A stretch of DNA of 63,694 nucleotides, filler included, from Octopus bimaculoides (taxonomy: Eukaryota): the NCBI RefSeq assembly GCF_001194135.2. It is 6 parts of 4 records of this genome, joined end to end, with 100 filler letters (N's around TTAATTAATTAA, not from the genome) between each part and the next. Parts side by side here need not be neighbours in the genome. Positions count along the whole stretch, not along the records: positions 1 to 15,574 come from NC_068995.1; 5 more parts are not named here. One strand, written 5' to 3'. The position numbers were made by a program, and so were the translations under genes. The notes under the pieces were generated by a model that saw nothing but the letters and a program-made list of their open reading frames with translations, searched no databases and had not been told where the DNA came from. Of this stretch, positions 1 to 12,507 are shown in pieces (position 1 is the first letter of the stretch; each line of letters opens with the position of its first letter).

Positions 1-338
1 AAGAGGTGCAGCAACATCAAAGGCAGGTTAACTAGGAAGTTAGCTTTTGTTTGTGGCAGATGTTCAGGTGCAATAAAGACTGTAAACAAACAGGAAACAA
101 CTTCTATCTCATTCCAGGGTGAAAAACTAGAGGTAGTCGATAGCTTCCGCTATCTAGACGACCAAGTTAGTAGTGGGGGTGGGTGCGCTGAAAGTGTAGC
201 TGCTAGAATAAGAATAGCCTGGGCAAAGTTTAGAGAGCTCTTACCCCTCTGGCGACAAAGGGACTCTCACTCAGAGTAAAAGGCAGACTGTATGACGCAT
301 GCGTACGAACAGCCATGCTACATGGCAGTGAAACATGG
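1..338 (+). mobile_element. RTE-clade LINE fragment (end of RT and post-RT region), frameshifted
   Basis: Translates QGEKLEVVDSFRYLDDQVSSGGGCAESVAARIRIAWAKFRELLP / KGLSLRVKGRLYDACVRTAMLHGSETW. Confidence 0.85.
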
Positions 339-769
339 CAAAGTTGAATATATACTTTCATTAAAGATACATATGTAAATTGATTTACATAACGAGTAAT
401 ATAGCTTGGATGAAGTGCTTGATAAAAAGATATTCTTCCGACCGTTGACGCCTTTGAAATACATCCAGAAAGATGAAATGGTCACAGGAATATGGGAGAC
501 TACATTTAAGACAGCAAGTTGTGATCTGAGGAAATTTAGCTGCTATTTCTACCAGCTGCTGTGAGGAAAATAAAAAAGCTGCAATAAGAAGAGTTATGTA
601 CCTTGTTTAAAAGAGAGAACACAAAACATTTGATCTCATAACCTTGGAGATAGTAACAAATATATTTTAAACTTCACAGCCAAAGACTTTTAATTATTTT
701 GGAATAAATGAATAGAATTTTGTGAGTAACACAATAACAATGGTATCAAATTTTGGCACAAGGCCAGCA

Positions 770-1070
770 AGATTTAGAAAGAAGGATTTGGTCAAATACA
801 TCAACCCCCCCCCCCTCCAGTACTTGACTGGTACTTATTCTATCAACCCTGAAAAGCAAATAGTTTTTAAATAAGGCACAAGGCCTGAAATTTTGGGGAG
901 GGGTTAAGTTGATTACATCGACCCCAGTACTCAACTGGTACTTAATTTATCAACCACAAAATGATGAAAGGCTAAGTCGTCCTCAGTGGAGTTTGAACTC
1001 AGAATGTAAAGACATGAAATGCCACTGAGCGTTTCGCCTGATGTGCTAACCATTCTGCCAGTTTACCACC
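770..1070 (-). mobile_element. SINE family A (gcctttcatcctttcggggtcgataaa core), CpG-decayed, partly duplicated
   Basis: Similar to copies at 25512, 26620, 52862, 62575 and 63295 but with many CG to TG/CA changes. Confidence 0.75.
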
Positions 1071-1362
1071 ATAATAATAATAATGATTATAATGATTTCT
1101 AAGAGGCACAAAATCCCATATTGGTGGGAGATAATCAGTCGATTTATATTGGTTCCCTCAGCAAATGACTGGTACGTGGCATTTCGCCAATCCAGGGTTG
1201 ATAAAATTAAGTTTCCATCGGTGGGATTTTAAAACACACACAAAAAAAAAAGTCACTAAATGATTCACAAGGCATTTGTTCGATGCTCTACTGGTCTGTT
1301 GCCAGCAACGATGAAGGGAATACGAAGCCTGTTGCAATGAAGTGGGTCCTGCCGTGGTCACT

Positions 1363-1488
1363 TTACTGAATGTCTACTTCAAAAGGCTCAACTGGACAAC
1401 ACTGACCAGTCTTCAGACATTTCCTCAGCCATTTTACGCTCACCACAAATGCAGCAGACGAGGCATAGCGCATAGTCGAGGCAAGATC
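1363..1488 (-). CDS. CHD1L: CHD1L terminal exon, BRCT C-terminal part: [41 protein letters not shown]
   Basis: tatttcag acceptor, TAA stop at 1365-1363, 126 nt; V-x-x-x-W-L-x-x-C BRCT signature. Confidence 0.85.
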   Translation of the reverse strand, partial: DLASTMRYASSAAFVVSVKWLRKCLKTGQCCPVEPFEVDIQ

Positions 1489-4400
1489 CTGAAATATTAA
1501 GGAGGAACTATCACAGTAAATTATAGAGAGACAGAATAATGTAGGTATCTTTTGCTGGGGTGGAATAGAGAGAAAGAGTGTGTACATTGATTGAATCCAG
1601 GGCCGACTGTAGTGAGTGTGTGTGGGAGGGGGGAATGCCTAGTTCTGCTGTTATGTGGTTGATTATAGAGAATGATGACAAGTATTTCAAGGAGTGTAGA
1701 GTTAAACCAACGAGGACCAGTGGGAAGAGAAGTGGAACTCATTGTGATACTAACCTGTTTGAAACTACCCCTGGTTATTTAACAGAAATGCTCGCAAACT
1801 TCATATTTTAATTAAAATCTTTAAAAGCTTAGGCAAGAAACTTGTCATACATATGCAAACTGTTTGTCACAATTAACTTCTGGTAGGGACACTATTTCAT
1901 TATGCAACTATATTACCAAGAATATTAAAGGCTTACGAGTCAATACTCTGTCCTGCCTGTGTTAGCAGTGCAATTCAATCACTTTTAAAGTTTTCTCTAG
2001 AAATTAGAGCGAGCACTGAAAGTTAAGTTTCATATATGAATACATCTGTGTAAACAGTGCCGGCTCTGACTTGTATAGAAAATTTTCTATACAAGTCAGA
2101 GTAGACTTTAAAAAGTGAAATTCTGAGTTGAGAAAGTTATAAATAATAGCATTTGGGTTAAAAAAAGACCCCTTTAAATGGAAAAGTCGGAGGCTGCTCA
2201 AGGGACTCAAACTCACATTTTCTGTAACCATGACAGATGTTCTACCATTGAACCAAAACAATCTTTTGAATTTCTTTTTCCATTTTAGAAGTTTTGTCCT
2301 TATCAGAGTTTGACCATTAAATAGAATTTCTTTCATGTTTTCTTGAAGTTTTGAAAGTCTTACAACGTAAACAAGAGAATTCTTATTGGTAAGAACAAGG
2401 CTTCTAAACTGGATAAGTTTGAAGAATTGCTTTCGTACAATGGTAGAGAATGTCTGTCATCTACAGAAGGTGTAGGCTTGAATCCCAGAGACAGCTTTTG
2501 ACTTTGTCCACCCAAGGGTAATTTTTAACCCCCTTATTTACATGTTATTTGTAGATCTACCTACTTTGAGTTCCACCATTCTAACGGTTCTGCCAGTTTG
2601 CCACCATGGATGGATGGATGGATAAAAATATGGCTGTCAGATAAAGTTAATGCATTTACACAAGCAAATGTAAAGACGACTGAGCAAATTTATTGTGGAA
2701 CGCATGCAAGCCTTTCCACTTCATGCCACAAATGTGTATCCATGGGGAAGGTCACTAACTTGGGTTGATACAGCTTAGCACCAGTGTTGTCACAGACAAT
2801 GCTGTCAGAACTAGAACAGATGATGCAAAGCATTTTTCCACATCAAAGAATTCTGTTAATCCACAACCCTGGGTTGGTTCTTTCTATGGAACCCCGAAAG
2901 GACAGAAAAATGGAATTGACTTTGACAGGAATTGAACTCAGACTGCAGACAATTGTATTGAAGAACCCAAAAACCTTGTACTCACCTCTATGTCACTGTT
3001 GATGCAGACAACAACATGGGTTGTACTTTCTGTTATTTCTGAATGAAACTCTCCATCGTAAGTGAACGGAGTTAAGGACTGGAACCATGGAACCAAAAAG
3101 AAGACAGCAAAAATAAATATCATCATCGCCAGCGCCATTATTTTGGCATCAACTTTTCCATGTTTGCATGGAAAAGGATAGTGACATGTAGAAGCACCCA
3201 GCACATTCTGTTAATTGGTTGGCATTAGGAAGGCATCCAGCCACAACAGACAGTCGGAGTCTGGACAGCTAGCCAGCTCCACGTCAAACTGTCCAACCCA
3301 TGCCAGCATGGAAAGCAGACGTTAAATGAAGATGATGATGATGCATGGGTCACACAAATGGAATTCATTGAAACAGATTTTCTACAGTTGGATGCCTTTC
3401 TTGTGATCGACCCTTACCCGTTTCCAAGATAATCTTTCCCTGAGGTCAAACATGTTTTCATAGAAGAATGACTGAGCGTTACTTGGAAATGAGCATCATC
3501 CTCATACAAGGAGACACAAACACACAGACAAATATATGATGGGCTTCTTATAGTTTCCATCAATCAAATTCACTCACAAAGCATTGGTAGGCCCAAAGCT
3601 AAATAGATGTGAAGACTATGTTTAGCCCTTCAGCATTTAAACTGGCCAGACCAAGCCAAAGACTGTTTTATGTTGAAATTGACCAGATCAAGCCTCTTAC
3701 ACCTATCCTACATCATCAAAGTCTCAAAACTACAAGATAATGCATGATTTATTTATAAAATGTCAATAAATAAGTATTACAACTGAATGTGGAAAGGTTA
3801 ACACTGCTCTGTCCACAAAGCCTCTGCCATACGACAAACAAAAAATCAAAAGGATATGCAATAATATAGCGTTTGTACATTTTGCTGTCTTCCGGGTTGC
3901 AGTTCCAGAGATGAAGAGAAAGTCCTTGGAATGTTTCCAGCAATCCATTTTGCTTTTTGGTATCTCCTTGAGACGTAGAGCAAACAGGTGATGCAGGGCC
4001 CGGCAATGCAGTGCCAGGCGATGCAACAGAGGATGGTTCATCATCTGTACGTGAGAAAAATTGAAGAATTAATGAGAGAGGTTAACTAGAGGGAGTTAAC
4101 TTATGGTCGTCGTTGTTTAGCCCAAGGGTGGCATTGAGATGGCAAATCTATGAAGAAAGACATGTTAACCATTAATTTCTTGTCTTTTGTTCAGACAGTC
4201 TATCTAGGATTACATCAGCCAATGTATCTTTTTTTTTCCATATTTTAAAACTGTGAGATTTGACTGCTATCTTTAGCAAGGCGAGCAGTCACTTACAGGC
4301 TTGGTTAAATATGATGTTGGTAGTGGTGATGGTTGGACTTTGGAATGGTATTGGTATAGGTGGTGGTTGAACTGTGGAGGCTGGACAATGTGAAGGTAAC

Positions 4401-7400
4401 AACACATCAGCAAACACTACCACCACCACCACCATACTATCAGGCACATACATAATGACCACCACTGTCAAACTATGACAATCTCTACAACCACTACTAC
4501 TACAGTTGTCAACAAAACGGTGTGACGCTGACCACCACCACCAGACAACTGACCTCTGGTTGATGGTCCAGCTTCCTGGGATGACCTTCTCCGCTTTAAA
4601 TGTCCACGTCGAGGGTAATAATATCTGGAGTGAGAGTTAAGTTAAACTTGAGTGGAGGTTTGTGAACGCGAGACATAATGTTTGTTTAGGTGAGTGTGTC
4701 ATAACAAGGAGTTTTAACATCATCTTAAAACCACCTCAGAAAAAGTGTCACAGCACAATACCACCACAATGGCATTAACTATGCCTATGCTACCACAATG
4801 GCATTAACTATGCCTATACTGCCACAGTTGTGCCGTTAGGATGTCATCATATACAACAGTGTGATAGCTTTCCATGCTAGCACCATCATAAAGTTACAAT
4901 TGTCATAATATTAGTAACCATCATAACTCAAGGACTACCATAACATTAGAAGTGTTCAGACATTATTCCGATAATATAAGATGAGTTCTAATATTGTCAT
5001 AACATTAGTACTGTCATAAGAATGTCATCAATCAATCCAAATTCCAAATAATTGAATACAAAACAAGATTTTGGCAAAGGATACATGTAGGTTGGAATTC
5101 CTTTCACTGCCAGATGTTTTCGGATGAGTCTCTCAGTTCCGTACCAGTTAAAGGAAGGTGTATCATGTCCTATTCTGGGTAAGTGAACACTGGCTGCAGA
5201 GACAAGAAGTGAGAGAGATTAATTACATAAGGCACCATACAGCAGAGGATCGCATTTTCTTTCAGAATATACACAAGTGTGTGTGTGTGATAAGAAATCA
5301 CAAAAACAAATGAATTCTTGGAGTTTTCCTCAACATGTTGATTTCTTGTCATTTTGGCAAGTGGTGTACAGCTGAGAGGTTGGGTGTTGGACTCATAATT
5401 GTGGGTTCAATTCTTGGACTGGACACTGAGTTGTGTCCTTGAACAAGGTACTTCACTTCACATTGCTCAGGTTTACTCAGCTGAAAAGCAGTACCAGTGA
5501 TAACTCTTGAGAGTTAATCCTGCAATGTATCCTTTGTAGTGGGGAAACCTTGTACTTTTCTTTGCCCTAGATACACTTCAGTTTATAAACCTGTAGATTC
5601 AAAAAGGCTTAGTTTGATTACACTCATGCTAATGATGTTCAATAAGGTAGAAACACTTAACAGTTGTCTCCCATATTTACTGGAAAAATATTAATAACCA
5701 CCGACTAAAATTTTGTTTTGTTTGTTTATTCCTTTCACTTCATATTTGATTCAGTTTTAAATGTTCAAAGGTCCAAATATCAGACATACCCCTACCCACT
5801 TAACTAGTGATCATAATGTCACTGCTACTGTTTAGCCCTGGGTCAGTGCTGGTTAGTAAACTTATGTCCAAAGACTCATAAATGTTCCAGTCATGACGCT
5901 CCAGTCTTGATCCATAAAACATTATCCAAACTTTAATGGATGGGATCTCACAATTGGTTGATATCAGTCAACAGCTATGGTGCTGCCCTCTAGTGGACAC
6001 ATACAAAAAAGGAAGATAATGCTAATTTACCATTTCTTTGTCTTGCCTCAACCGAAACCTTCCTCAGTCCTTCTTGTAAAGCCTCCATCTTGATCCCAGA
6101 TAAATTATTACTTTTAGTTCGATGTTGGGCTACGATAAGGGCCAGCTGGAAAGGAAACGGTGAAGAATGTCAGGTTTTGTTAGCAGGAGACTATATAGAT
6201 GGTGGCACAATAGGGACTACATAGGTTTGGCACAGTGGCACAATAGAAACTATAGAAATAAAGCAACAGAGAATATCAGAATATAGAGAAATAAATTAGT
6301 GAGGGTGAGTGAAGGCAACAGTGAGTGGGAGGTTTTACTTACCCAACACTTTTCATCTTCATTCAGAGTAATTAAGTGGCAGTCACCGAGGTTTATATCT
6401 GAAAGTGGACGATGGAGAGGTGGGCAGGGTTAGGGTTAGCAGCAGCAGGCAGTTGTGTCTACATGACAAACAGGCACACAATTATGTTTACATGACAGCT
6501 GATGGAGGGGGAGGCACAGCTGTGTCAAGATAGGGCGACACACAATCGGGGCTACATCAGAACAGCCAGGAGCCTATATAACAAGGGTACAAACTGCATG
6601 TCTGCAGAACATTAAGCCTTTCTCTCCTCCTACTCTTATCGTTCATCTTCACACTACTCCTCCCTCTCCATAAACTGGTGATCAGTATTTCTAATACACA
6701 ACTATGATGAGAGAAGTGAATCAAATGTTAAATTTGATTGGTTGTTTCAGTGTCATGTGACAGCATATCAGGGCTGAATAAACATGTAATGCACACATGG
6801 AAGTGGTACATATAACTGCACACATGGCAGCACCAAACCTGCACATACACATGACAGCACTAAACACATGCACATACATACACACAGCAGTGCCAAAACC
6901 CTTATTTCCTCCACAAAAGATAACCACTAACCAGCCCCCTCCACTTACCTTTCATCTCTTTGGCCAATTCATACTGTGTCTTTGGAATTGTTGATCTTGT
7001 TGTGATGGCAGTAAATACCCCTCCTACACCCCATTGGCCGGAATTGTCTGATGAAAAAAAACAAGAATTATTATTGCAGATACACCATATCAATACATCA
7101 TCGTTGCATGAAAAAGTCTTGCATGGATCAGACAGAATTCATTGAGGCAGATTTTCTACGGCTGGAGGCTCTTCCTGTTGTCAACCATCACCTGTTTCCA
7201 AGGAAGGGAAATATTTTCTCTTAGTCTAGACATGTTTGCATGAAAGATTGCAAAACAAACATCTCTGGTTGTAAGATGGTGATGTGTTTTCAATATTTCT
7301 TTTAAAGCCCAAACATTCACCAACAACAGAGACCTAACCCTGGATATGAACTACAGATGTGGTCTGGCTGTCATGGTCATGTATTCCCTATAGAAATCCC

Positions 7401-8945
7401 ATTTTTCGCCATTGATTTATCTCTCAGAAGAAGAAGCTCTGCATCTACCACAACTCGGTCTTCTGTTCTCCTTTATGGAGAAGAAACATGGCCTCTCACA
7501 AAGACCCTGGCAAAAAGGATCAATGGCTTTGATAGCAGAGCCCTGAGAACCATCGAGAACATCAGATGGTAACATCATGTTTCCAACAAAGAACTGTGAA
7601 TGCATATCCGGCTTCCCACCTCATAGCCCTCCATTTGCAATACACTGGCATGAACATGTCCTCCGTCTCCTGTTAGATTGTCCTAACAGAGCTTTACTTA
7701 CTCTCATTTGACACAGCAGGGGTCAAAAGTGATTAAGCAGGATCTCCAGAGGCTCAATGTCATCCTGGAGGATGCAGAGTGGCTGGCACAAAATTGCCAG
7801 CAATAGAGAGCCCTGGTGGACCAGGGTACCTTTGGGACCATTAACCTGGCATGACCACAGCACCATCAAGCAAGCAAACATGAAATAAGGAAGCATGTAT
7901 TATTTCTCCAGTGAAGGAATCTGGAGGAGGCAATCAAGGTAAGATTTGAACTCACAACCACGAGAACATCATGACAGCCAAAACCTCTTTTATAAGCCAC
8001 CTCCCCCCATCTTTCCTCACAGGGTCACAAAAAATCAGATAGAGATCAATAGTTTACCAATACAATGGATGACAAAGCTTTGGTCAGTCTGTGGCACGGA
8101 CACAGGGTGTGTCACATCTCCTCTCACATAGGAAATGTCCACAGGGTCTACAGAGTTTTCTTCCTCATCACTGTCTTCTTCGGAGCCATCTGATGTCAGT
8201 TTACATGAAACGTAACCATTTTCTTTCCACAGAGCAGCCCTGGAAACAAAGTAGAAATCGCATTGAGAAACTACCCAGAGGTGCCATGCTCATGAAAAAC
8301 AATAGTTAAGTCGTTCATTTTGAAGTTTTTCACACAGAACTCATTAGAAATGTAATTAGAAATAATTATCTAGTACGGAAAAGTCAATATTAGTCAATAA
8401 ATATAATTATTTTAATGAGCATTTAAGGTCCATACACACATTATAACTATTAATTATGTATTGCACATAAATGTTGTCTACTCAAAGTGGTGGTCAGCAG
8501 TGAGTTTCCAAAAAAGAAAGAAACATGATAAATTGCTTATAAAATGCTGATGTAATATTGTATTATTTGTTTACAAAATAAATATAAAATTAAAAAAAAT
8601 TGTCAACTTTTATTTTATTCATTATTTATATTGTTTCCAGTATGAATTAATATTACTAAGAAATATTACTGGTCCCTGGCACATTGGAAAAAAAACAAAA
8701 AAACTGCTGGAAGGCCACCTCAGAGAGTTTGAGAAGCATTGGTCTAAGTGACGCTAAAACTGCCCTGAAGATGGAAATGACACTGTATACATATAGGCAC
8801 AGGTGTGACTGTGTAGTAAAGAAGCTTGCTTTCTAATCATGTGGTCTTGGGATCAATCCCACTGTATGGAGCTTTGGGCAAGAGTCTTCTACAAAGCATT
8901 TTGAATGGATTTGGTAGATGGGAACTGAAAGAAGCCTGTCATGTG

Positions 8946-8976
<31 letters not shown>

Positions 8977-11900
8977 CTTTGTCTAGACATCTGGTGATGG
9001 TTGTAAACAAGAATCATCATCATACAAGCAAGGGTGTTCATTTTCATTCTTCCATGAAAAACACGTTTGTCCATGGAAGGGGTGGACATTACTTTGCTTG
9101 GAAACCGGTGAGGGTTGGGGACAGGAAGGGCATCCAGCAATAGAAAAATCTGCCCCATTAAACTCCGTCCAACCCATGCAAGCATGGAAAAGTGGATGTT
9201 AAATGGTGCATGCATGTATAGTATTCAAAGTCTCTAGATGTAAAAGTCACTCACTTCTTTTCTTCCTTCTCGGCAGCCCTTTTTCTGGCTAAGGCCTCTC
9301 GTTCCTTCAGTTTCTGTTCTAAAGTCTCCTTGCGCTATGTTGGAAGAACAACATGGAACCAACATTAGTTAGTGTGTAACAATAACATCTGAAACACATC
9401 AAGAGATGTGTAAGGAGGATTTGAACTGAAAACATTACAAGACACAACGTCATACTACAAGACAAGTCCATCCAGTTCTGCCATCTACATCGAAATATAA
9501 TTCAGAAAAATTCCAGAGTTCCTCACCTTATTTTCTCGTTCTTCAATTTGTTCTGGAGTCAGTTTGGTACTAGAAGTGGATGGCATCGCCACAGAGACAT
9601 TTCTTCTTTTACCAACCACAACTTCTGGTGCTTCTACACAACATAAACACAGGGAACAGAAACTTTTTAGTACCGAGTTAGGCTACAAAGCAACACATGC
9701 ACACACACGTACACATACACACATGTATGTGTGTGTGCAGACATACAAATATAGTAAAGACAGTGTGTGACATTAAACTGGTCTGGAAGGAAGTGCAAGG
9801 GTTACGTGCAAAGAATCGTTTCCACTGCAATATATTGTGCTCTGCACTCCCTCCATATGCACACTGTGCACCACCCTGTTTGCACAATGGCATTTCATTG
9901 CACACAAATGCTCTATCCTCCACAGAAGGGGAGGGGGCCATGCCTACATCATTTCTACCACTCCCCTATATGCAAGCCTATTCGAGACACTAAGGAGTTC
10001 CAGAGGGAGAAATTTTGAAGACAAAGGATTGGTAGAAAGAAAAGACAAAAATAATGAAAGACAAAGACAATCTGAGAATTGAAACCGTTTCGACTTACCT
10101 TCTCCAAGTGTGTCAAAGGCATCAAGATCAGCTGCAGACGGCGCTTTAGAATAGTCAAAACCGTCAAATTGGTAAATCGTGGATGGTTGATCTTCTGCGT
10201 CATCATTGGTTTTGAAACACTGACAGAGAAGAGCAACAACAGTATAGAAGGGAAGGTAGAGGTGTGTGTGTGTGTGTGTGTGTGAATTGTACCATATATG
10301 GGCATACTGACACAAGTATATATTGTCATATGATGTTGTAATACATCACAAGCAAATATGGTCATACAGTGAAATACTGTAATACAACATTACCAAATAT
10401 GGTCATATAGACAGTGTAATACGCTACCAAACATAGCCAGTGATGTAGTGTAATACAGCTTTACCAAATATGGTCATACAGTGATGTGCAATGCATCATA
10501 ACCATATATGGTCATACAGTGATATAATGCTTTATCTAATTATACATCACTGGCTATGGCCATACATTGAGCAGATGGTAAGGCCATTGGTCTGTGATAT
10601 AACTGACCATACAACCACATTGTGAGTTGAGGAAAAGTAAAATTTGGTTGTACATGATGGATTGCTGGATAGACAAGGTTATACATGTGTTACCTGCTGT
10701 CATACAGGTGTCTTTCACGATTACACAAAGTCATACAAAGGTTCAGTGCCAGTTATGGTCACCCACTGATGCCCAGGAGTATGCCAGATTGGACATGGCA
10801 ACCCACGGGTCAGACAGGTTAACCCCTGTATTCAAACATCATGATCATTTCATGTCCGCTTTGGAAAGCGGCAAATTTCAGGGCGGTGTTGAGGTTCTAA
10901 AATCATCTTTGGTGAAATATGCAAATATGGAAGGCAAAAATTCAGACAGAGTGACCCAGTACCAAACAATACCCATCATCATCATCATCAACTAAGACTA
11001 CAGTAACACATTGGTCACTTACCTGTTGTCCCACCAAATCTGTTGCTTCTTCTTGGTCACTTATTGTCCACTGATTGTTGTCTGAGCTGCCCAATACAGC
11101 AGGGAAGTCAATGGACAGAGGAGTGTCCCCAGAAGGGTTCTGCAGCAGTTTGTCAACCCCAAACTTCAGAATATCTTGCAGCTGCACATGAAACACAAAC
11201 ATCATCACCACTATCATCATCATCAACATTATCACCATCATCATCATCATCACTCCCACCACCAAAGCCCAGACTACTGCCACCCCTTTATCAGAACAAA
11301 TTCACTCAGAAGGCATTAGCCAACCCCAGGCTGGTTAGCAGAAGAGACAAGCCCAATGTGCCATGTGATGAGAAAAGGATCCTCTTAACCACACAGCCAT
11401 TCCTGCACCTGAAGAATTTAGTAAAATAACTTAGTCATAATTATGCTGGGGTTTGGAACATTAAATTTAGATAGAATATGGATGGAAGGCTTAATTTTGA
11501 TCCTTTTAAAACAAGGTTTGAATCATAGAAGCGAGGGAAGGGGTCTTAAGGGGGTTAGCATCAAAAAGGGTTAACCAAGGAAGGGTCCTTTTAATAATGT
11601 ATGTTAAAATACAGACCTTTTGACCAGTGACTCTTACCTTGACTTTGTCATCAGTGATGGAGGAAATCTGTGAAGCTTTCTGAGTTTTCAATGAAAAGTT
11701 TCCCTCCTCGATGACACGCTTGGTTAACTTCAGTTTCACTGCACTCCGTTGGAAGATGATGTCTTCAACTGTGTCAGCACCGATGAGGCGTATAATTTTC
11801 ACTGGGCTGGTTAACAGGTGAAAAACAGAGAGAGTCAACCAGATAGGTACATAAGTATATGGTTGAGAGGGGGAACTGGGAGAGAGAAAGAGATAGGGAG

Positions 11901-12437
11901 ATATATATAGTGGTGGTGAGAGTAGAGGTGAGAGAGAGAGATGAAGATGTGGGAGCAAGTAGATATGGAAGAGAGAGAGAGAGATAGGGAGATATATATA
12001 GTGGTGGTGAGTAGAGTATATACCAGTATCACGCAAATGGCTCCTGTACCAGTGGCATGTAAAAGCACCCATTACACTCGAGTGGTTGGCATTAGGAAGG
12101 GCATCCAACCTTAGAAACCATGCCAAAACAGTCCATGGGTAGGGCCCTACAAAGGCACTCAACACATTTAGTAGGAGTCACATATGTTATTATTTAAAAT
12201 AGTTAGATTCAGCTCAATGTGACTTCAAGTTTCACCGGCTTCTAACAGAAATCTGGCTCTTTCAATACCACGTGACCCACTGTGACCCAATAGCAGCCCA
12301 TTTGCCAGTAGCCATCTTGGACTTGCTGTGTTTCTTCATTCAGTAATCTGATAGTGAATGAGCTGGGTTTCTGTCAGAAACCTGCAAAACATTAAATTGC
12401 ATTGAGCCAAATCAAACGGTTTCAAATAATTATAATT

Positions 12438-12507
<70 letters not shown>

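Follow-up and report, generated by a model that had tools for sequence, protein, structure and literature searches.

Does the chromatin remodeler CHD1L (ALC1) end with its macro domain, as the human protein does, or can it carry a further domain, and if so, of what kind and what age? The question is raised by a stretch of Octopus bimaculoides DNA (assembly GCF_001194135.2) of 63,694 nucleotides (nt), joined from several parts of that genome and referred to here in its entirety as the window. Positions 1-15,574 come from NC_068995.1, and CHD1L lies there on the minus strand; all results below refer to this part. A first-pass annotation, made from the sequence alone, had proposed that the reading frame continues past the macro domain into a C-terminal BRCT domain of XRCC1-BRCT2/LIG3 type, regarded as an extra domain and possibly a new fusion, with the caveat that it might be an ancestral feature lost in mammals. 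Our analysis makes it very probable that CHD1L carries a real, ancestral BRCT domain of the dimerization type.

Reading of the minus strand reproduced the proposed exon coordinates, the open frame past the macro domain, the four further exons, and the peptide that they encode. Five exons (5101..5085, 4624..4554, 4044..3858, 3061..2986, and 1488..1363) join in frame, and the joined peptide, which extends ∼146 to 147 residues past YYYPR, ends with EPFEVDIQ at a TAA stop codon (1365-1363). Upstream exons were mapped by tblastn with full-length orthologs and a frame-aware junction search, which added 11 exons. The resulting 16 exons (13888 to 1363, minus strand) form one open reading frame (ORF) of 627 codons, the sole stop of which is the terminal one. 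The product aligns in a single stretch to residues 374-864 of human CHD1L (E value of 2e-130), the alignment ending at GIPTYIYYYPRR (YYYPRR), and scores 439 bits against human CHD1L, compared with at most 111 bits against CHD1, INO80, ISWI, and HELLS. Pfam Helicase_C was matched at 55.3 bits. The macro domain aligns over the full length of its human counterpart, and the sequence RGDVTHP corresponds to human SGDVTHP, its Asp being the equivalent of D723, which in human ALC1 binds ADP-ribose (PMC5087659). Because the human CHD1L alignment runs in one stretch with a score far above those of other SNF2 subfamilies, and because the D723 equivalent is kept, we conclude that the host gene is the CHD1L/ALC1 ortholog, as the first-pass annotation had called it. 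The 3′ two-thirds of the gene fall within the window: its first exon here starts at the equivalent of human residue 374, and the SNF2-related N-terminal domain (ATPase lobe 1) is encoded farther upstream, past the window edge. From the helicase C lobe through the linker to the macro domain, the product is collinear with human CHD1L (PDB 7otq, 7epu, and 7enn). The human protein has 20 residues left after the macro domain; the octopus protein adds ∼146, which make up a basic patch, a linker, and a BRCT domain.

The BRCT domain occupies the last ∼95 residues of the tail. Pfam searches with the tail returned LIG3_BRCT (PF16759; 47.7 bits, cutoff 27, E value of 2e-12), BRCT_2 (PF16589; 34.2 bits, cutoff 27.3), and BRCT (PF00533; 27.3 bits, cutoff 21.3). 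All three scores lie above their cutoffs, so a chance match is excluded. The BRCT of DNA ligase III-alpha (3pc7, 3qvg_A, and 1imo; PF16759) was the best match of the single sequence in the PDB, as it was in Pfam, with ligase LLDIF and RRYFVAFDGD corresponding to octopus LLETF and KRYIIAYDGE. A family profile, built from 20 CHD1L BRCTs with the octopus sequence first, matched XRCC1 BRCT2 best (64 bits, E value of 1e-16, end to end), followed by BRCTs of TOPBP1/Rad4; the LIG3 BRCT scored lower with this profile, at 44 bits. AlphaFold 2 modeling of the domain with the 20-sequence alignment gave a predicted local distance difference test (pLDDT) score of 90 and a predicted template modeling (pTM) score of 0.82; a single-sequence run reached a pLDDT of 38 and was not used. 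The strands (E) and helices (H) of the model, E14-18, H22-34, E49-52, H55-68, E73-76, and H77-86, follow the canonical BRCT order. A Foldseek search of the PDB returned 132 matches at an E value of ≤0.001, the best 50 of which are all BRCT domains. The top seven were all XRCC1 BRCT2 chains, with template modeling (TM) scores of 0.74 to 0.79 and a root mean square deviation of ∼2.1 Å, and XRCC1 BRCT1 followed at rank 8. W79, the Trp of the last helix, is invariant in the 20 CHD1L BRCTs. The single sequence, the family profile, and the predicted fold all place the tail domain among BRCTs of the XRCC1-BRCT2/LIG3 class. The first-pass annotation had named the same class, and the Pfam and structure checks that it proposed for the last ∼100 residues bear it out. 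The setting differs from that of XRCC1 BRCT2 (1cdz, 3pc6, 3pc8_A, and 3qvg_B; TM score ∼0.78), which sits on a scaffold protein, whereas the octopus domain sits on a remodeler.

A BRCT domain encoded downstream of CHD1L might nevertheless belong to a separate gene or transcript, in which case the apparent fusion would be an artifact of in-frame joining here and of read-through gene models elsewhere. The octopus joins come from sequence-based modeling, and annotation pipelines do mis-model this locus, having split CHD1L of the coral Porites lobata in two and avoided an AT-AC intron in that of the teleost Trematomus bernacchii. We nonetheless consider a separate gene very improbable. Tail exon 1 starts mid-codon within the conserved macro domain C terminus (I-YYYPR) and therefore cannot be a first exon, and the macro exon before it runs without a stop codon into a consensus U12 donor. 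In other species, transcript-like contigs that contain no introns extend from macro domain to BRCT in one ORF; among them, a 974-nt Logan contig (L001) encodes a macro-linker-BRCT protein (P0001) across five intron positions of the octopus gene. Full-length proteins from contigs of 3 to 4 kb carry everything from SNF2 through BRCT, and macro and BRCT domains share one chain in 41 of the 87 homologs found with a macro-plus-tail query. From the mid-codon exon start, the U12 signals at the joins, the conserved introns described below, and the intronless contigs of other species, we conclude that the BRCT and the CHD1L remodeler are predicted to form a single polypeptide. The claim of a C-terminal BRCT on the same chain is thus upheld by the Pfam scores, the 627-codon ORF, and the spliced contigs of other species.

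Two of the four tail introns, 5084..4625 and 3857..3062, are of the U12 type and not ordinary GT-AG introns. Our criteria were a /RTATCCTT donor, a TCCTTAAC-like branch box 9 to 12 nt from the 3′ splice site, and AT-AC or GT-AG termini, and both introns show these features. Intron 5084..4625 has the U12-type donor GTATCCTTT directly after the macro exon. Intron 3857..3062 is of the AT-AC type, with donor ATATCCTTT and a 3′ AC, and interrupts the BRCT at the IIA/YDGEF join. The sequence RTATCCTTT occurs three times in the window, compared with an expected 0.45, and both minus-strand copies fall exactly at frame-preserving exon ends. For the join inside the BRCT we also considered a reading restricted to GT-AG introns; it adds 14 residues within the domain (at IIAY/DGEF). 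The AT-AC join is preferred because it restores the conserved motif R-Y-x-x-A-Y-D-G.

Both U12 introns were found at the same codons, and with the same U12 type, in P. lobata (L002, 16869-17737 and 18000-19230) and T. bernacchii (L003, 4764-6489 and 6771-7726). In the coral, the intron within the BRCT seems, when placed so as to preserve the frame, to end in AA instead of AC. Because position and type are kept in a coral and a teleost, both introns are very old, and their conservation strongly supports the exon joins of the octopus gene model. Human CHD1L likewise has a U12-type intron near its 3′ end, where it has been validated (PMC4066798). A further octopus intron, 4553..4045, splits the linker and is one more than the compared BRCT-bearing orthologs possess.

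The same introns bear on how CHD1L has been annotated. In P. lobata, the gene is represented by two adjacent same-strand models (CALNXK010000087.1, 1-8888 and 10001-19795), one encoding SNF2/Helicase_C (467 residues) and the other linker, macro, and BRCT (517 residues) and named only "BRCT domain-containing protein"; the two are probably one gene split by annotation. In T. bernacchii (L003, 6760-7730), the deposited protein reads YLITYDGD where AT-AC splicing gives YLVTYDGD, and it seems that a GT-AG-like solution was imposed at the AT-AC intron during annotation. Gene models limited to GT-AG introns miss the join inside the BRCT, and an AT-AC intron in the domain together with a U12 intron before the tail leads to split or mis-spliced models in which the domain is easily missed.

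How widespread is this architecture? Searched against a large protein database, the 158-residue tail alone gave one match, compared with 87 homologs for the macro domain plus tail, the nearest of which are 45 to 47% identical over that region. Macro and BRCT domains occur together in records that bear the name CHD1L, from a sponge (Amphimedon), a coral (Pocillopora), and three teleosts (Anarrhichthys, Liparis, and Trematomus), as well as in proteins of P. lobata (coral), Chaenocephalus (teleost), and Rotaria (rotifers) that are unnamed or listed as hypothetical. These sequences from teleosts, sponge, corals, and rotifers are fragments. An exhaustive profile search identified full-length proteins of 920 to 1,100 residues that match from macro to BRCT at their extreme C terminus, and six of the nine full-length proteins tested contain SNF2-rel_dom, Helicase_C, and LIG3_BRCT or BRCT_2 (Pfam); examples are CHD1L of the lamprey Lampetra fluviatilis (XP_078713538.1, 1,104 residues) and a protein of the nematode Pristionchus. 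An acoel is also among the lineages with SNF2-macro-BRCT architecture and an alignable BRCT, and the C terminus of CHD1L from the chytrid Irineochytrium matches Pfam BRCT above cutoff (23.8 bits). Because E values for distant BRCTs from a 232-sequence database are lenient, these cases were retested with Pfam, which kept Irineochytrium and Pristionchus. Compared with the octopus protein, the orthologs of L. fluviatilis, T. bernacchii, Amphimedon queenslandica (isoform X2), and P. lobata share the domain order and the conserved Arg, Gly, Thr-His, and Trp residues, with identities of 20 to 32% in the BRCT and 31 to 47% over macro domain plus tail.

Other CHD1L proteins end soon after the macro domain. 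Those of human, cow, lynx, peccary, meerkat, owl, and coral snake stop within 14 to 30 residues of it, which agrees with the first-pass statement that human CHD1L ends a few residues past YYFPR. A priapulid protein and that of one other nematode also appear to stop after the macro domain. In A. queenslandica, one protein (P0034) extends 45 residues past the macro domain and lacks the BRCT, and a second (P0043, "CHD1L isoform X2") has it; the pair may be alternative isoforms, or one may be a truncated model. A guanidinobutyrase-like protein of Lytechinus pictus (P0086, 350 residues) matches the last CHD1L macro exon over 40 residues at its C terminus (293-332) and is probably a chimeric gene model.

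That the BRCT is a lineage-specific, newly evolved fusion onto CHD1L is suggested by the amniote proteins, human included, that do not have it, and by a searchable literature in which CHD1L ends at the macro domain. Such an origin is already refuted, and hardly credible any longer, given how the domain is distributed and that intron positions are shared: sponge, corals, rotifers, nematode, acoel, lamprey, teleosts, and chytrid fungus have the same architecture, with BRCTs that can be aligned, and the intron within the BRCT lies at the same codon, with the same rare AT-AC type, in coral and teleost. The first-pass proposal of an extra, new fusion accordingly falls, since SNF2-macro-BRCT proteins, already present in public annotation, span a chytrid fungus at one end and lamprey and teleosts at the other. 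Its caveat of an ancestral architecture lost in mammals is the version that fits: the BRCT is widespread, and the sampled mammals, birds, and squamates are without it. On the simplest reading of these sequences, SNF2-macro-BRCT would be the ancestral CHD1L architecture, in place at the latest in the common ancestor of fungi and animals and lost since then, in one case before amniotes and apparently also in some invertebrate lineages. The occurrence of the domain across lineages is an observation, from which we infer the direction of change, ancestral presence followed by loss.

Several points weigh against an ancestral BRCT of this class on CHD1L. Support beyond Opisthokonta is weak: the protist Diphylleia scores 18 bits with Pfam BRCT, below cutoff, and was downgraded to "probable" only. 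Chytriomyces gave no Pfam BRCT match and was dropped. Among vertebrates, the sample consists of lamprey, teleosts, squamates, birds, and mammals, not of amphibians, lungfish, coelacanth, or sharks, and places the loss no more closely than before amniotes. The octopus BRCT is only 18 to 20% identical to XRCC1 BRCT2. The exon joins of the octopus gene are deduced from frame, splice signals, and orthology, and BRCT-less isoforms are possible, for example through retention of a slowly spliced U12 intron; a transcript ending within intron 5084..4625 is predicted to encode a product with the C terminus LML.

A search of the open-access literature turned up no paper in which CHD1L/ALC1 is credited with a BRCT; the composition given in reviews, and in a 2025 zebrafish/mouse study, is ATPase-linker-macro. 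As far as we searched, the CHD1L BRCT is visible in databases through automatic annotation but undescribed and functionally unexplored in the searchable literature. The octopus gene is a further BRCT-bearing CHD1L ortholog and not a new kind of system.

What might such a domain do? One and the same face serves XRCC1 BRCT2 and the LIG3 BRCT for homodimers and heterodimers alike (Cuneo et al. 2011, PMC3177190), and it comprises the Arg of the R-Y pair (XRCC1 R562, LIG3 R870), the [DN]-G-[DE] turn (N568-G569-E570 and D876-G877-D878), and the acidic residue of LPDFF/LLDIF (D539) (PMC3177190). The octopus BRCT has equivalents of all of these, in its L-L-E-T-F, Arg-Tyr, and Asp-Gly-Glu sequences. 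Among the 20 CHD1L BRCTs, R30 is nearly invariant and G37 invariant, and the T-H pair and the Trp of helix 3 are also among the most conserved columns. Phospho-binding BRCTs of the BRCA1 type have Ser/Thr-Gly after strand 1 and a Lys in helix 2. Read by eye, the octopus loop after strand 1 is W-N-C-N-P-E-D, without Ser/Thr-Gly. Because the interface residues are kept and there is no obvious phosphate-pocket motif, we propose that the CHD1L BRCT is most probably a dimerization module. The alternative is that it acts as a second ligand reader, for phosphopeptides or for poly(ADP-ribose) (PAR), as does XRCC1 BRCT1; XRCC1 BRCT1 is indeed among the structural matches, and many of the BRCTs in the profile search are phospho-readers. 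We think this improbable, since the best matches by profile and by fold belong to the non-phospho-binding XRCC1 BRCT2/LIG3 class and the loop, in the by-eye comparison with BRCA1-type BRCTs, does not contain Ser/Thr-Gly.

As a dimerization module, the BRCT would tie the remodeler either to the XRCC1-LIG3 complex of single-strand-break repair or to a second ALC1 molecule, with the macro domain still supplying PAR-dependent recruitment and release of autoinhibition. XRCC1 BRCT2, the LIG3 BRCT, and a second ALC1 are all plausible partners, and the data do not choose between them. Docking onto the XRCC1-LIG3 complex, which the first-pass annotation had suggested in the form of direct contact with LIG3 or XRCC1, would be one plausible outcome, to which we give somewhat less than an even chance even if the domain is ancestral and of the dimerization type. 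A real and ancestral BRCT could instead serve ALC1 itself, as a homodimer or through an intramolecular contact that tunes macro-ATPase autoinhibition. XRCC1 BRCT2 and LIG3 BRCT homodimerize through the same face that forms the heterodimer (PMC3177190), and the octopus domain keeps that face. In zebrafish chd1l mutants, rescue by human CHD1L depends on the macrodomain (PMC12456972); if zebrafish Chd1l carries a BRCT, this suggests that the domain is not needed for the rescued function. Nothing speaks directly against a role within ALC1; the S/P-rich linker, which is long and poorly conserved, resembles a tether to an external partner more than a regulatory hinge. On balance we hold such a role to be unlikely, though by no means negligible. 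In XRCC1 itself, specific residues of the N-terminal linker bias BRCT2 toward the LIG3 heterodimer (PMC3177190).

The proposed link of CHD1L to ligation, as distinct from a role within ALC1, can also be considered from the side of the ligase. One 1,223-residue protein (P0194; ENA contig of 5,162 nt) contains DNA_ligase_A_N, _M, and _C, followed by an ALC1-like macro domain, BRCT_2, and LIG3_BRCT, the last at 86.9 bits, and the Dictyostelium DNA ligase III ortholog has been described as carrying a macrodomain (PMC5087659). As in the octopus protein, an ALC1-like macro domain precedes the BRCT; unlike in that protein, P0194 has an ATP-dependent DNA ligase as its catalytic module in place of the SNF2 ATPase, and two BRCTs instead of one. 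A macro-BRCT cassette common to remodeler and ligase supports a functional link between CHD1L and ligation. Tentatively, a BRCT-BRCT dimer might have joined ancestral ALC1 permanently to the nick-sealing complex of XRCC1 and LIG3, the macro-BRCT cassette having moved between CHD1L and LIG3 of the dictyostelid type, and amniotes might have exchanged the covalent link for PAR-only co-recruitment. Because slowly spliced U12 introns bracket and split the BRCT, its inclusion might further depend on the activity of the minor spliceosome. No such scenario was found in the literature that we could search.

Table 1. Coordinates of CHD1L exons, U12-type introns, and associated signals in the window
Feature	Position	Strand	Evidence and remarks
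CHD1L exon, helicase C lobe (YTYERLDGS...STRAG)	13775..13888	-	tblastn to orthologs, junction search, ORF; earlier exons beyond window edge
CHD1L exon, helicase (...HRFGQSR)	12602..12716	-	tblastn, junction search, ORF; Pfam Helicase_C
CHD1L exon, end of ATPase lobe 2	11638..11806	-	tblastn, junction search, ORF; donor position ±6 nt
CHD1L linker exon	11023..11181	-	tblastn, junction search, ORF, human alignment
CHD1L linker exon	10099..10219	-	tblastn, junction search, ORF, human alignment
CHD1L linker exon, basic/coiled-coil region	9527..9633	-	junction search, ORF, human alignment
CHD1L linker exon, coiled-coil	9255..9334	-	junction search, ORF, human alignment
Acidic linker and start of macro domain, including RGDVTHP	8058..8239	-	junction search, ORF, human alignment
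Macro domain exon	6949..7047	-	tblastn, junction search, ORF, human alignment
Macro domain exon	6343..6398	-	comparison with contig L001, junction search, ORF
Macro domain exon	6031..6145	-	comparison with contig L001, tblastn, junction search, ORF
Last macro exon	5085..5193	-	minus-strand reading, joins, comparison with contig L001, ORF
U12-type GT-AG intron, macro domain to tail	4625..5084	-	donor GTATCCTTTG; branch-like ACTTAAC 11 nt before AG (degenerate branch box)
Tail exon 1: macro domain end (IYYYPR) and basic patch RGHLKRRR	4554..4624	-	joins, comparison with contig L001, tblastn
Tail exon 2: S/P-rich linker and N-terminal third of BRCT (from ∼3946, ...KRYIIA)	3858..4044	-	joins, Pfam, BRCT alignment
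AT-AC U12-type intron inside BRCT	3062..3857	-	donor ATATCCTTTT; 3′ end ...CAC
U12 branch-point box TCCTTAAC	3071..3078	-	9 nt upstream of 3′ splice site
Tail exon 3: middle of BRCT	2986..3061	-	joins, Pfam, BRCT alignment
Tail exon 4: C-terminal third of BRCT (DLAST...DIQ) and TAA stop (1365-1363)	1363..1488	-	joins, Pfam
Possible poly(A) signal, ∼670 nt into the 3′ untranslated region	689..694	-	only AATAAA/ATTAAA hexamer 3′ of the stop; weak evidence

The DNA of the window is ∼40% G+C and rich in microsatellites. Many of these, of the (TC)n/(GA)n, (AC)n/(GT)n, and (TA)n types, lie at ∼12430-12560, 14510-14600, 8890-9010, 9680-9800, 10200-10320, and 15525-15573, a load typical of a repeat-rich invertebrate genome, and a codon-like, ATG/ATC-rich simple repeat lies near 11170-11290. 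A dispersed repeat resembling a short interspersed element (SINE) is present as four partial copies of 71 to 85% identity, all of them intronic (3181-3480, 7120-7202, 9044-9205 in inverted orientation, and 12052-12110); it explains several spurious ORFs with similar peptides (…LDALP… and …HASME…).

Nearly all that is known of ALC1/CHD1L biology, including its part in the response to inhibitors of poly(ADP-ribose) polymerase, comes from mammals, whose protein ends with the macro domain. Our analysis suggests that the default, ancient form of CHD1L carries in addition a dimerization-type BRCT, of the class through which XRCC1 and DNA ligase III are joined. This gives rise to the testable idea that chromatin remodeling and nick sealing may once have been physically coupled, an idea that could be examined in teleosts and in Nematostella-like cnidarians.

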